64,000 bases of DNA, taken from assembly GCF_006345805.1 (NCBI RefSeq), contig NC_043004.1:82708001-82772000 (forward strand), written 5' to 3'. Under the pieces are notes generated by a model, which had not been told where the DNA came from, did not search any database, and saw only the letters and a program-made list of their open reading frames with translations. The position numbers and the translations under genes were made by a program. This stretch comes from Octopus sinensis (Eukaryota). Each line of letters opens with the position of its first letter. Positions within the stretch are counted from its first letter, which is position 1. Shown piece after piece: positions 3,001 to 59,281 of the stretch.

Positions 3001-3662
3001 GAAAATCTTCAGAAAACCTAAAGACAAACAAATAATCGAAGCATTCACCAAACATACAATTGAAGAAGTTTTATAACAATAACTTAATATTTTCTTTTGT
3101 AACTCTTGTACTTATATTTTCACCCGTTATTGTGATCATTACTATGAACCACGTTCTCCCGTTTTTCAATGAGAATATTTGGAATCAATCAGTCATTATT
3201 AGAAAAACCAGCAACATTCTTGCCTTAATTATTTCAATAATAAACATTTTATTTAATGCTGTGTCAATTACAGCTGTCATACCTGATTGGTATATGGATA
3301 TTGCAATTGGGACTGCACTGCTATATGAGTTTAATAAAGTAGCGAGCGAGGCTCAGAGATACGTAGAAGAAAAGTAGTCAAACACTTTGTATTTCTTTCA
3401 GAAATATAAAGAAATTACAGAAATATGTAACTCACATGATACTCTGAGTTCAATACTGAAATTAGTAAATGAATCATTTCAGTTGACTTCGGGATTTATC
3501 ACACTAGTTTCTATTAATGGATGTTGTATTGCAACTTACATAATTGTTAATGATTCATTTAAAACTGTATTCTCTGTACACACTACTGTTATATTTGTGA
3601 CTTCTATAAACGTAATTTTTTCGATCACAATGATCTGGATTGGAGTCCGTTTAAATAAATCG
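3001..3662 (+). pseudogene. GR-like chemoreceptor exon copy 1, 5'-truncated pseudo-exon
   Basis: KIFRKPKDKQIIEAF...YEFNKVASEAQRYVEEK*...EITEICNSHDTL...WIGVRLNKS. Frameshift near 3065, TAG at 3375-3377, donor TCG|GTAAG after 3662. Confidence 0.85.
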
Positions 3663-4043
3663 GTAAGTTATAGAAATATTTTATAAAATTCTGTCATCTG
3701 ATTTTTTAATTCTTTTTATAATACATAGTACATCATAGAATATATCGAATTAGCAAATTCATTATTGTGTGGGAACAATACTTTACGTCATATACACACA
3801 TACATACATCTATATATATATATATATATACACAGACACACACATACATGTGTGCATACACACACACATACACATACACACATATATATATAAACAAGCA
3901 TAAATACTGACCGGTATATATGTGTATATGAACGTGTCACCTTACATAAGAAAAAGTATACAACGTCCAAATACATAATCTTTAAATAAGTGTTTCGGCT
4001 TTTATATCCATTAGAAGAAAGATAAATATTATTATTATTATTA

Positions 4044-4822
4044 TTTTATGAGGCAGATATAACAAAAAAGCTTTTACTCAAACAACACAAGTAAACTTTG
4101 AAAAAATAATTGATATAATACTGAATAATAGATATGAATATAACATCCATATGTCATTTATTGTATTTGTTAAAGTCGATAAACACTCAGAAGCTATGTG
4201 CGTGACTGTGTGTACGTGTATTTATGTACGTAGGCATGTATGTACCTATATATAAATATTCATACTGATATTCCATTTTGTGTATTCGTGAATGTTCTTT
4301 TAATTTATAGACTCTAATCCCTATGTGTCTTAAAAAGCTTTAATTTTATTCTTTTAATAGTTTCAGTTATTAGACGGTGATCCTGCATGAGCTCTTTTAA
4401 GCTTAGTGGATTTTTTTAATACTTATACAACATCAATAAGAACTAATTAAAAGTAATATCTAAGTACGGAGAAACTAAATCATAGATGCATGCTACTATA
4501 TTAATCAAAAGAAATATCAATGCTCTTTTAAAAGGCAGATATAATACGAGCTTATTAACTTTCTGATGTCCATTTTGAAACAATGCTTGATATAATACAA
4601 ACTAATTGATATCAGTAAAATATTGATTTTGTACTTGTACATATAACAGTCTCAAACAACCAGTAATATACAGTTACGTACATGAAACAGTACAAAGCAT
4701 TATAAGATATTAGAAGATCTATAAAAGTGAGAAACAGCTTGTTGGTTTTAACTGTTGACTTTGAAGCAGCTATTGAAGAAGTTGTAGTTACAAACAACAA
4801 AACAGAACCAAAAAGAAAAAAA
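4044..4822 (+). promoter_or_regulatory. Conserved non-coding upstream module of receptor subfamily I (TTTTATGAGGCAGATA-containing)
   Basis: Homologous blocks at ~8350/9800-10148, 17454-18224 and 31369-32226. Indels are not multiples of 3, so non-coding. Regulatory role is inferred. Confidence 0.45.
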
Positions 4823-5776
4823 ATGCAACTCAAAGAAACACGATTCTTTAAAATGATAGAACTGTACCAGAAACTTAATCATATCAGGTTATTATTTACG
4901 AGTATCGCATCTCTGAAATCGCTGAAATATAGCGCAATTTGTTTTTATGCGTTTTATGCAGTGTATTGTCTATATTCGATTGGAAAACCCGCTCTAGATC
5001 TTGTTATTTTAATACAACTGAGAGATAGGACACCTGATGAAATATTTGTGTATATTTATTTCATATTTTCTCATTGTTTCCTCACACTGCATTGTGTTAT
5101 AAAATCCTTCAAAAAATTTAATGCTGAGGAACTAATAGAAGCTTTTGACAAAATTAAAGTTCAAGAAGAAGATAAACAATTCTACAATTCAGCATCAATA
5201 TATTCATATAAGTTATTAGGTGTTGTTATATTCTTGAGAATTATAATTTATTTTATCATCATTCATTTAATTTCGTATTTCAATGACAATTTTGTTAGTT
5301 GGTTAACATATCCTGTTTCAGTTAGCAATCCGTATAAATGGCCGATGTTAACAATTCAGGTTTTATGTAATTGCATATCAATTTCATCGTTTACACTTGA
5401 TTTCTATATGAACTTTGCAATTGAAACTGCATTGTCCTATGAATTCAACAAAGTAGCGAAAGAAGCTCAGAGATACATCGAAGAAAAGCAATCAGACGCT
5501 TCGTATTTCTTTAAGAAATACAATGAGATTACAGAAATATTTAACACACATGATACTCTGATTACAACAGTGAAATTAGTAAATGAATCGTTTCACAAGA
5601 CGGGCGGACTAATCGTAATTAGTAGTATTTTTGGATGTTGCATTGCAACTTACGGAATTATAAATGGTTCCTTTACAAATATATCATATATATACTTCTA
5701 TGTTTCATATCAGTTAACTAATTGCCTTACTCATTTTATTACAACGGTTTGGATAGGAGTACGTTTAAACAAATCG
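4823..5776 (+). CDS. GR-like (GRL) 7TM chemoreceptor, large coding exon (TM1-TM6), copy 2, intact
   Basis: 318 codons from ATG (MQLKETRFFKM) to WIGVRLNKS, then phase-0 GTAAGT. Six hydrophobic segments; HDTLxxxVxLVNESF and CCIATYG motifs. Confidence 0.8.
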
Positions 5777-6049
5777 GTAAGTTATATAATATATTTATAT
5801 AGTTCTATCAACTGCTTATCCGTGATTCTATATTACATGTGACATCATGAAAGACAAGGAATTAATAGACTCATTGAAGAGTCTACACAAATTTTTGTGT
5901 CCTTTTCTTGGTTTTCTATGATTAGGAATCTTATTCCACAAATAAGAATCGTACCAGTTATCTTTCCAGGTTTTGGTAATAAAATTTGGTGACTACAGTA
6001 TATATTTCGCTGTTTTCCACTCGCTCTGTCTCTATCTTACTGAGACTGG

Positions 6050-56639: not shown

Positions 56640-56900
56640 AAATTAATAATTATCGCCATACTAATGTGGCAGTCTTATGAATATAAGACTAAAGCTGTCG
56701 CTGATTAGCTCCAAGAGGCCACCGCCTCTAGCTAGCTATTTGACACACAACCTGCGTCCATTACAAACCTTCGAACAGGGGAGGGCAGCCGCTTCATCCC
56801 GCTAGTCAGACAGCTGCAGACATGTTTCAGGGTTGTTGCCCTTTATCAATGCAGCGTAGTCAGACCCGCAGGTGTCGCTACCGACCGTCTCTGTTCGAAG
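56640..56900 (-). mobile_element. Penelope-like relic, paralog of 37580-37860, with decayed hammerhead (56814-56854)
   Basis: Minus strand: CTGCA-TTGATAA-AGGG..CCCT-GAAACATGTC-TGCAG. Confidence 0.5.
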
Positions 56901-57245
56901 ATTTTATTTACCTATATATATATATATATATATATATATATATCCTCAGGTGATACTCAGTTGGCGTCTAAGTAAGCAAGTTTAGATTGCCATCGCCTGA
57001 GGAGATACATATAGATCTTCTTATACAAGTAAATCGTTAAATAATTTAATTGAAACGTAAACTTAACTTTAAATCCTGTATATACAAGGATCTATATGTA
57101 TCGAAAACTTTCTAGCGATTGAAAAGCTGCCTAACCGTACTTAGTGTTGCTTTCGACTCCTCATTTTTACTTTATAGTAAGTATGAATGCATATATATAT
57201 ATATAATATATATATATATATATATATATATATATATATATATAT

Positions 57246-57665
57246 GCGCAGGAGTGGCTGCGTGGTAAGTAGCTTGCTTACCAACCACCTGGTTCTGGGT
57301 TCAGTCCCACTGCGTGGCAGATTGGGCATGTAACCTCTACTATAGCCTCGGACAGACCAAAGCCTTGTGAGTGGATTTAGTAGACGGAAACTGAAGGAAG
57401 CCGTCATATATATGTATATGTATGTATATATATATATATATATGTGTGTCTGTATGTGTTTGTTTGTGTGCCTCAGTCCCCCCCAACATCGCTTGACGAC
57501 CGATGCTGGTGTGTTTACGTCCCCGTAAAAGAGACTGATAGAATAAGTACTAGGCTTACAAAGAATAAGTCCTTGGGTCGATTTGCTCCACTAAAGGTGG
57601 TACTCCAGCATGGCCGCTGTTAAATGACTGAAACAGGTAAAAGAGTAAAGAGTAAAGAGTAAGAG
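57246..57665 (+). mobile_element. SINE family B, near full length
   Basis: GCGCAGGAGTGGCTGCGTGG head, B box and tail. Confidence 0.85.
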
Positions 57666-58345
57666 AATATATATATATATATATATATACATACATGCAT
57701 GTAAGTATGTGTGTAAGTGTGTGTATGTGTATACGCACACATTCATTTTAATTATTTGTGTATGTATTCAACAGTAGTCACAATATACATTAATGAATAT
57801 TGCTTCATTATTGGAAAGAGTTAGAAACTAACTTTCCCTGAACAAACATTTACAAGATCACATTATTTTTCAATTTGGTAATATATATATATATATATAT
57901 ATATATATATATATATATATATATATATATATATATATATATATATATATAATGGAAGTAAATAAATTCTGTATTTGCTATATTTATTTAGTTTTCCCTA
58001 TTGTGACAAGCATATATTAGAAAGTAATATTTGTTAAACGGTAACATCTTCAGGCCTCTGAATAAACGTAAATTTTAGTAAACCGGAAAGATTCTATTGA
58101 AAATTCATCAGAGGTTTGTACCAGGACCATTTGGATGAATTGAAAGGAATTTAATCAATATACTAATTGATTCATATTTCGATATTTATATTATTTCTGC
58201 ACGAGTGTAAGCAATCTAGTAGTTCGATAGCCTGCGCAGTAAGAAGTAAACGGCACGTGAGCTAGGTGTATTATACCAGAACTTAAAACGAAGAAGGCGG
58301 ATTGTGAAAAACAAAACCCAAAAAATCAAGGATCCAAAAGAAAGA

Positions 58346-59281
58346 ATGTTCCTAAAACTACTGGAATTTCATGGAAAAATGCATGATTTGAAAAGAAAAG
58401 CTACGAAAATCTCACACCTGAAATCAGTTGAATTTAAAACAATATGTTTGCAAATTTTATGCAGATTGCTTTGTATATATTTGGTTATAAACCCCATTCT
58501 ACAAATTTATGGTTTAATTCAACTGGACTCTATTACAGGAGATAAAGCATTTGCGTATATTTATATAATATGGTTTCGAAGTACCATATCTCTCCATATT
58601 ATCTTGAAACTGCTCATCCCAGGGAAAAACACTCATCTAATTGAATTATTCAGAGAAATTAAACTAGACGACGGCGAGGAAGAGTTTTATAACAGTAATG
58701 TTATATTTTCATTTATGACACTATCAATATTCAGTATTCTCTTAACTATTTGGAATATAATTATTGAGGCCATTTTACCAATTTTGAGTACGGATTTGCT
58801 GAATTTCGCTACATATGCTCTACCTATGAAGAATATACATCAAATAAAGGTTTTCATAATACAGGTTGTATTAAACATCATCGCACTTGAATTCTCTATA
58901 TTTGATGTTTACATAAACTTTATAATCGCATTTGCACTTACTTATGAGTTTAATAAATTGGCGAAAAGGGTTCAAAGATATGTAAAGGAAAAGCAAGCAG
59001 ACAATCAGTTTTTCTTCAACGTCGACAGAGATATTACAGAAATATGTAACGCGCACGACACGCTTAATACAATGCTGGGATTACTAAATCAGTCAATATG
59101 GTGTGAATCTGGATGTATTGCACTTAGTTCTATTATTAACTGCTGTATCTCAACTTACGGCATTATAAACGATTCATTCAAAAATAACACCTATATATTC
59201 ATTTATATAACACTACTGACTTGCGCTGGCTTCTTAAATTTGATGTTCATGTTTTGGCTTGGAATTCGTTTAAATAAATCG
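58346..59281 (+). CDS. GR-like chemoreceptor exon copy 9 (most divergent), intact frame
   Basis: 312 codons from the first ATG (frame open from 58250). YEFNKLAK, DITEICNAHDTL, CCISTYGIIN, WLGIRLNKS|GTAAGT. Confidence 0.75.

Follow-up and report, generated by a model that had tools for sequence, protein, structure and literature searches.

Receptor genes with alternative first exons

In the gustatory receptor (GR) gene Gr39a of Drosophila, several large alternative exons are individually spliced to a common trio of small, conserved 3' exons: the bulk of the receptor is encoded by a large exon, and its C-terminus with the seventh transmembrane helix (TM7) by the small shared ones. Gr28b and Gr23a work in the same way, and the logic is also that of the clustered protocadherins and of UGT1A. 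Here, a stretch of 64,000 nucleotides from Octopus sinensis (contig NC_043004.1, positions 82,708,001 to 82,772,000 of the forward strand; hereafter the window) is analyzed, which very probably represents the 5' four-fifths of a single gustatory-receptor-like (GRL) gene, LOC118764608, built from alternative first exons and one constant region. The mechanism is not new: its logic is that of the insect Gr39a and Gr28b genes, and the splice pattern of three of the octopus exons (c7-c9 below) is already recorded in RefSeq. Nevertheless, a full-text literature search returned no paper on octopus or cephalopod GRL genes, on their splicing, or on this locus as a variable/constant receptor cluster. 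Reviews treat cephalopod chemoreception via the nicotinic-like chemotactile receptors, on which studies of contact chemoreception in the octopus have concentrated.

The variable exon array and its shared donor

On its plus strand, the window carries nine paralogous exons of ~950 nt (c1 to c9, from 5' to 3'): six intact exons, a frameshifted one, a truncated one with an internal stop, and a fragment. As defined from the list of open reading frames (ORFs) and by tblastn, the paralogous segments reach ~320 codons and are all encoded on the plus strand. With the Octopus bimaculoides homologue as a query, tblastn reports plus-strand segments at 3000-3662, 4835-5776, 10161-11096, 18216-19115, 32221-33183, 36876-37253, 40768-41724, 47165-48124, and 58331-59281. 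The intact exons c2 (4823..5776, 318 codons), c3 (10149..11096, 316 codons) and c5 (32227..33183, 319 codons) each start with their own ATG and terminate with GVRLNKS, GIRLNKS and GVRLNKS, respectively, followed by a phase-0 donor; c2 occurs in no RefSeq isoform found, and c3 and c5 are unannotated. The other three intact exons also possess their own ATG. Among them, c7 (40771..41724, 318 codons) is the first exon of LOC118764608 isoform X1 (XP_036361421.1), and the last 70 codons of c8 (47168..48124, 319 codons) and of c9 (58346..59281, 312 codons from its first ATG) form the N-terminal parts of isoforms X2 (P0034) and X3, respectively.

Eight of the nine exons end at the same donor, TCG/GTAAG (the slash marks the exon border), located after positions 3662, 5776, 11096, 19174, 33183, 41724, 48124, and 59281 and in phase 0 in every case, and all eight window exons with a donor carry the terminal motif G[IV]RLN[KRNT]S. 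Scanning for TCGGTAAG locates it on the plus strand at 3660, 5774, 11094, 19172, 33181, 41722, 48122, and 59279; the total on both strands is 10 matches against 1.12 expected, a number that none of 100 shuffles reached. An earlier note on this DNA, made from its letters, had listed these eight donors, and its positions coincide exactly with the scan. Its further statements, that eight of the nine paralogous exons share the phase-0 donor and the G[IV]RLN[KRNT]S ending and that each complete copy has its own ATG, hold for all eight donor-bearing exons and for all six intact ones. The conservation extends beyond the window, as a GTRAGT donor is found at the same phase-0 position in all ~20 donor-bearing variable exons of three loci, namely O. 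bimaculoides LOC106880719 (genomic segment L001) and O. sinensis LOC118764607 (L002) and LOC118764608 (L003).

The six ORFs of ~318 codons remain open in DNA of 29-38% G+C, and the ratio of nonsynonymous to synonymous substitution rates (dN/dS) between variable-exon paralogues ranges from 0.28 to 0.64, the unannotated pair c2/c3 standing at 0.64 and the annotated pair c7/c8 at 0.54. Together with each exon, ~300-400 nt upstream of the ATG have been co-duplicated. On the other side of the exons, the first ~20 intron nucleotides 3' of the donors are semi-conserved (GTAAGT[GT]T[AT]ATAA..TAT; window 3663-3690, 5777-5805, 41725-41750, and 48125-48150, with equivalent sites in L001 and L002), the exons themselves being only ~40% identical in protein. 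This stretch may represent an extended donor context or a splicing element.

A single set of constant exons beyond the window

The long intron that starts behind c9 occupies the plus strand from 59282 to 64000 and continues past the window end. Its continuation is available in L003 (CM016866.1, 82,738,771-82,798,359), whose bases 1-33230 correspond to window 30771-64000 with 100% identity over 33,230 nt, which places the window at CM016866.1 82,708,001-82,772,000; coordinates past 64000 are given below as window-equivalent positions derived from the L003 DNA. A tenth variable exon, c10 (73091-74041, plus strand), is intact and ends with GVHLNKS at a donor TCA/GTGAGT, which brings the locus to ten variable exons, seven of them intact, as compared with nine and six in the window. 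Downstream of c10, a set of three small exons occurs exactly once in L003, at a distance of 13.4-16.4 kb from the window end; all three are on the plus strand, in phase 0, and bounded by canonical AG/GT sites. C1 (77443-77511) encodes 23 residues, VHSITQSIHYMQFQGVDQEVVAK, C2 (78419-78508) encodes 30 residues, ILVFLNRLTTESHGIDVGGCFVITPSSTLT, and C3 (80303-80359) encodes 18 residues, MIGSFITYILVVIQTKPL, followed by a stop codon and containing the TM7 motif TYILVVIQ. C1 shortens to 9 residues if an internal acceptor known from relatives, 42 nt further on, is used. The common exon or exons that the earlier note had placed downstream of 64000 are hence found as one C1-C2-C3 set at 77443-80359, and the tBLASTn-type search for a single TM7 set that it had proposed for the downstream DNA yields this one set, after c10, in L003.

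The tail exons C1-C3 are absent from the 64-kb window, in which the best tblastn matches have E-values of 0.13-0.28 and the best ones for C1 and C2 contain stops. As a positive control, the same queries reach E-values of 1e-7 to 1e-17 in L001 and L002. Since C1-C3 are 80-98% identical at the nucleotide level between clusters and species, a private copy in the window would have been detected. Likewise, tblastn of the O. bimaculoides tail over the window reports chance matches only, and a regular-expression scan for [ST][YF]x5[QE] near a stop in the six frames of the window returns ~40 matches, none of which lies in a hydrophobic exon-like context. Three weak matches just upstream of c3, c6, and c9 (at 9868, 36695, and 57739) were discarded, as they are not conserved as coding in the paralogous upstream regions. 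Finally, all-against-all blastn of the nine spacers reveals no small common exon but only interspersed repeats, in both orientations, and the duplication flanks of c6, c7, and c8. The C1-C3 tblastn and the regular-expression scan, both empty, thus agree with the suggestion, made from the window letters, that no TM7-type exon lies between the copies.

Annotated isoforms joining variable exons to the constant set

The connection between both parts of the locus is documented by RefSeq proteins. P0019 (XP_036361423.1, isoform X3) consists of 70 residues from the end of c9 followed by a 71-residue tail whose coding sequence is absent from the window. Isoform X2 (P0034), identified when P0019 served as a query, is formed by the last 70 residues of c8 and the identical 71-residue tail. 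Exact look-up of the predicted joins, each intact window exon being combined with the tail, identified XP_036361421.1 (isoform X1, 389 residues), which is letter for letter the c7 product plus the tail; the corresponding look-ups of c2, c3, and c5 with the long tail found no product. The recorded gene range of X1 covers 39.6 kb and starts at the c7 ATG (L003 10001). LOC118764608 is, therefore, an array of variable exons with a shared donor and a single constant set, and its isoforms X1, X2, and X3 are made up of c7, c8, and c9, respectively, plus the common tail. The RefSeq isoforms cover three of the seven intact variable exons of the locus, and two of these three models are 5'-truncated.

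Two arrangements at odds with a shared tail had been named in advance, private acceptors in the spacers and TM7 exons as numerous as the variable exons, and the annotated isoforms exhibit neither. The proposal that at least six intact exons splice to a common tail stands for c7, c8, and c9, based on RefSeq X1-X3; for c2, c3, and c5 it keeps the rank of a prediction, their use in this manner being suggested indirectly.

Protein family and predicted fold

Regarding the family, the full-length O. bimaculoides protein P0002 matches Pfam 7tm_7 with 31.6 bits (cutoff 26.6) over residues 41-388 and is 42-45% identical to the window exons, P0036 reaches 30.3 bits, and c5 alone yields a weak match (17.5 bits, E 0.0028). 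The AlphaFold2 model of X1 has a predicted template-modelling score (pTM) of 0.72, and the predicted local distance difference test (pLDDT) of its variable part is 70-89 in most 10-residue blocks. Foldseek analysis of this model against the PDB reports exclusively insect odorant receptor (OR), GR, or Orco chains at ranks 1 to 23, with TM-scores of 0.43-0.60 and a probability of 1.00 for ranks 1-22 and 0.97 for rank 23, the next hits having a probability of at most 0.35 and a TM-score of at most 0.25. A profile search of the PDB sequences returned no meaningful match. In the model, residues 1-318, encoded by the variable exon, form an N-terminal helix and six long helices, and the tail contributes two helices (residues 336-355 and 366-386) that would be S7a of the anchor domain and S7b of the pore, as suggested by the TM7 motif and by homology.

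The C-terminal motif was considered separately. C3 (MIGSFITYILVVIQTKPL) displays TY, five hydrophobic residues, and Q, with a final T instead of the F of the family. C1, C2, and C3 are each preceded by a phase-0 intron, the last of which directly adjoins the TM7 exon on its 5' side. Conserved introns of this phase toward the 3' end are regarded as characteristic of animal GRL genes, according to the passage of PMC7746228 that cites Robertson 2015. Taken together, sequence and model support the assignment of these proteins to a divergent GRL (7tm_7) clade. The GR/GRL (7tm_7) membership put forward in the earlier note is supported by a relative above the Pfam cutoff and by the match of the predicted X1 fold with insect OR, GR, and Orco structures. 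The putative receptors are predicted to have an ion-channel and chemosensory function.

Related clusters in octopods

When c5 was used to search for homologues, the sole annotated match was the O. bimaculoides LOC106880719 product (376 or 390 residues, with a precomputed Pfam 7tm_7 hit). HMMER analysis with a profile of the window exons against 1.84 billion representative proteins reports 18 matches, two of which are short O. sinensis RefSeq proteins, and the family appears to be restricted to octopods as judged from these matches. Two proteins of Logan contigs from another dataset, P0020 and P0022, share ~25% identity with the window exons and stop at the equivalent position (NSS/VS and HQN/VS, respectively), which points to more distant family members with the same exon boundary.

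LOC106880719 (L001) comprises five variable exons, one with an in-frame stop, and a C1-C2-C3 set located 18 kb further on. Its isoforms X1 and X2 begin at the first variable exon, skip the other four, and differ by the use of two C1 acceptors 42 nt apart. Isoform X3 (P0035) leads from the donor of variable exon 1 to a cryptic acceptor, ttgcag, within variable exon 2, and the constant exons follow; the join connects L001 10903-10957 with 17545-17604, and the end of exon 1 is read in another frame. X3 appears to be the outcome of aberrant splicing that has entered the records as an isoform, and its cryptic join indicates that pre-mRNAs begun at exon 1 run through exon 2. In LOC118764607 (L002), a single C1-C2-C3 set follows two fragments and seven variable exons of full length, of which one has an in-frame stop. 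Its isoforms begin at the first of the seven variable exons, 65 kb upstream of C1, and skip the six others; a further gene record, whose product has 389 residues, shares the end coordinate. L002 was considered as a possible continuation of the window and ruled out, as it is a separate cluster ~0.4 Mb away on the other strand.

The constant exons are far better conserved than the variable ones. The C2 protein is 100% identical in four constant sets, as compared with 37-63% identity for variable-exon paralogues, and the 90 nt of C2 (L003 47649-47738; L002 79184-79273; L001 57231-57320 on the plus strand and 50832-50921 on the minus strand) are 96-98% identical among these sets, which represent two species and two or three clusters. 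The introns flanking C2 cannot be aligned (54-57%), and for C1 and C3 the identity between the LOC118764608 set and the others is no more than 80-84%. The synonymous sites of C2 look frozen, which could reflect gene conversion confined to this exon or a constraint acting on the RNA, for instance through an element for splicing or editing. RNA structure was rejected as the reason, the joined C1-C2-C3 RNA folding no better than its shuffles (z = -0.45).

The fourth constant set is a second, inverted copy of C1-C3 on the minus strand of L001 (50542-52809), between the last variable exon and the plus-strand constant set, which suggests a convergent neighboring cluster with an interleaved 3' end. 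In all four sets, an (ATT)n microsatellite followed by TTTTCTATTTCACATCTAG directly precedes the C1 acceptor (tracts at L003 46600-46672, L002 ~75160-75233, L001 ~56040-56116, and in the inverted copy). The idea that this tract and the ~20 nt behind the variable-exon donors act as a docking and selector pair was dropped: both are AT-rich and of low complexity, so that no specific complementarity can be claimed.

Degenerate copies and mobile elements in the window

Three of the nine window copies are broken. c1 (3000..3662, plus strand) is a 5'-truncated remnant with an in-frame TAG near 3375 that has kept its TCG/GTAAG donor at 3662, and it is a pseudo-exon. A LINE-like (long interspersed nuclear element) piece occupies window 933-3076 on the plus strand, consisting of an ORF without a Pfam match followed by an endonuclease (Exo_endo_phos_2, E 1.5e-13), and the endonuclease ORF (1718-3076) reads directly into c1, truncating its 5' end. 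c4 (18225..19174, plus strand) carries a 1-nt frameshift ~50 nt 5' of its intact donor, with GVRLNNS in the shifted frame, and is a pseudo-exon in this assembly; its closest relative, P0006 from another dataset (62% identical), is open across the whole exon. c6 (36879..37253, plus strand) is a 125-codon 5' fragment cut by a (TA)n microsatellite and devoid of a donor. The spacer between c4 and c5 houses a near-complete retrotransposon lacking long terminal repeats (non-LTR) on the minus strand (window 21728-26495), composed of a zinc-knuckle ORF1 (25614-26495), an endonuclease (23582-25036), and a reverse transcriptase with a zf-RVT domain (21728-23542). This stretch has the highest G+C content of the window (43-47%).

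Proposed gene design and alternative explanations

In the design that we favor for LOC118764608, transcription would start just upstream of one chosen variable exon and continue through all variable exons downstream of it. The cap-proximal donor of the chosen exon would be joined to the C1 acceptor and, having no acceptor of their own, the downstream variable exons would be removed as intron. Each variable exon is predicted to encode the N-terminus and helices S0-S6 (~318 residues), and each mRNA would yield a subunit of seven helices whose ligand-facing body is private and whose tail is the same in all isoforms, this tail holding the putative S7a of the cytoplasmic anchor domain and the pore-lining S7b. 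The exons c2, c3, c5, and c10 probably serve as first exons too, given their open frames and perfect donors, the dN/dS values of 0.28-0.64, and the long-range splicing annotated in the related clusters. We further infer one private promoter per variable exon from the individual ATGs, the upstream ~300-400 nt duplicated with the exons, TATA-like motifs, and the X1 gene range starting at the c7 ATG.

Several observations weigh against this scheme or temper it. No annotated product begins at c2, c3, c5, or c10, and the isoforms were modelled automatically for RefSeq (by Gnomon) under the name 'uncharacterized protein', X2 and X3 being 5'-truncated. The dN/dS values of 0.5-0.64 in the youngest pairs denote moderate constraint. 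In DNA so rich in AT, the TATA-like motifs located 80-100 nt 5' of many ATGs say little about promoters. Lastly, the window isoform X1 (P0037) gives no match with Pfam 7tm_7 at threshold and its tail (residues 330-389) is modelled at pLDDT 33-48; a relative passes the cutoff of the 7tm_7 (PF08395) profile and X1 does not, so that its membership is established through homology to members and not directly.

The alternative that survives best, although we regard it as unlikely, is that only the proximal exons c7-c9, and perhaps c10, are live, c2, c3, and c5 being young relics or not productively spliced. The missing isoforms starting at these three exons would agree with it, as would the first homologue search, based on c5, which found no O. 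sinensis product, the loss of three of the nine window copies (c1, c4, and c6), and the dN/dS of 0.64 for c2/c3. This ratio, however, is not clearly different from that of the annotated pair c7/c8 (0.54), and low, cell-restricted expression would account for the missing models of c2, c3, and c5. Moreover, these exons keep ORFs of 316-319 codons open in AT-rich DNA, each with a perfect TCG/GTAAGT donor, and in the two related clusters the annotation has precisely the most distal exons joined to the constant set, across 45-65 kb.

Somewhat less probable still is a Dscam-like organization, in which the variable exons would be internal and mutually exclusive behind one shared 5' non-coding exon and promoter. 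The transcript starts are those of the gene models, a TTTAG or TTGTAG located 50-70 nt upstream of the ATG of c3, c4, and c5 offers a possible acceptor, and the semi-conserved ~20 nt behind the donors or the (ATT)n tract before the C1 acceptors could in principle be a pairing element. The putative acceptor is missing, however, from c2 and c6-c9, and all intact variable exons bear their own start codon, at which, for c7, the recorded gene range of X1 begins. X2 and X3 begin inside their own variable exons, without any common upstream exon in their sequences, and the duplicated ~300-400 nt 5' of each ATG likewise argue for separate promoters. Private promoters are also what Gr28b, Gr39a, the clustered protocadherins, and UGT1A use.

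It is very improbable that automatic annotation created the shared-tail isoforms artificially by chaining a protein alignment across neighboring genes, the true 3' exons being different ones. The isoform evidence does consist of Gnomon models of uncharacterized proteins, but the shared-tail pattern has been modelled independently in two species and three loci, and the 5' truncation of X2 and X3 is what would be expected of read-supported partial models. In addition, the cryptic acceptor and frame shift of O. bimaculoides X3 could never have been proposed from protein homology, the splice borders are canonical and phase-compatible, and no other TM7 exon is found in ~90 kb. As for the reading of each copy as an independent gene, with diverged TM7 exons hidden in the spacers or a six-helix read-through protein, short Logan contigs (e.g. 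P0005-P0010, from other datasets) that encode variable exons reading through the donor and the recurrence of the first read-through codons (VSVI.YLY) among paralogues speak for it, but these contigs look as unspliced genomic DNA would, the window holds no homologue of tail exons that are conserved at 80-98% between clusters and species, the spacer comparison gave only interspersed repeats and duplication flanks, the regular-expression scan gave no TM7-type terminal ORF, the GTRAGT donor is kept in phase in ~20 exons of three loci and the annotated isoforms are spliced, so that this least credible explanation is largely refuted.

Comparison with known systems

The design with alternative first exons and one constant region, which we retain for LOC118764608, indicates that octopods possess a small, fast-evolving GRL clade arranged in variable/constant clusters, in which ~10 receptor bodies would share one pore and anchor tail. 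It also calls for a correction of the annotation, seven intact first exons being present where RefSeq records three isoforms, two of them truncated. The RefSeq models of LOC118764608, LOC118764607, and LOC106880719 are unnamed and carry no link to GR/GRL receptors; the latter two loci are paralogous or orthologous clusters of the same design as LOC118764608. At least 22 variable exons are seen in the three clusters of the two species. It is conceivable, if doubtful, that octopods have packed most of their lineage-specific GRL repertoire into a few protocadherin-like clusters, forming a second chemoreceptor system beside the nicotinic-like receptors. If so, each sensory cell could acquire one ligand-binding body through a promoter choice that is stochastic or depends on the cell type, and all isoforms would be able to co-assemble into tetramers by virtue of the anchor and pore tail that they have in common.

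At the level of the protein, the predicted fold of X1 matches only the insect OR, GR, and Orco channels, such as BmGr9 (8vc2), DmGr43a (8jm9), and Orco (6c70). These tetrameric ligand-gated cation channels and X1 share a length of ~390 residues and the TM7 motif TY-hhhhh-Q (h, hydrophobic), and the 3' introns of the octopus locus are of the conserved GR type (PMC7746228). In contrast, the sequence identity of X1 with the insect structures is 10-15%, and its motif ends with Q-T and not with Q-F.

Like the clustered protocadherins and UGT1A, the octopus locus is composed of tandem large first exons with their own ATG and a few shared constant exons, the downstream variable exons being removed as intron. 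The protein families are unrelated, however, and the constant part of the protocadherin/UGT1A type is a cytoplasmic signalling sequence, whereas that of the octopus locus is a predicted pore helix. Furthermore, the protocadherins select their promoters by means of a conserved promoter element and of CTCF/enhancer looping; promoter choice in the octopus is a prediction.

Gr39a and the octopus locus both have phase-0 introns near the C-terminus, both have exons that were gained, lost, or pseudogenised within the array, and both belong to the 7tm_7/GR superfamily. They differ in that the octopus proteins, from a mollusc and not an arthropod, are so diverged from the insect GRs that only some of them reach the Pfam threshold, and in that clusters of this kind number at least three in octopods, their constant exons being nearly identical. 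The octopus locus is a larger version of the design seen at a few insect GR genes: its ten variable exons extend over ~80 kb, as compared with the 4-5 over a few kb of Gr39a, and it bears on whether this design is ancient in the GR superfamily or arose repeatedly.

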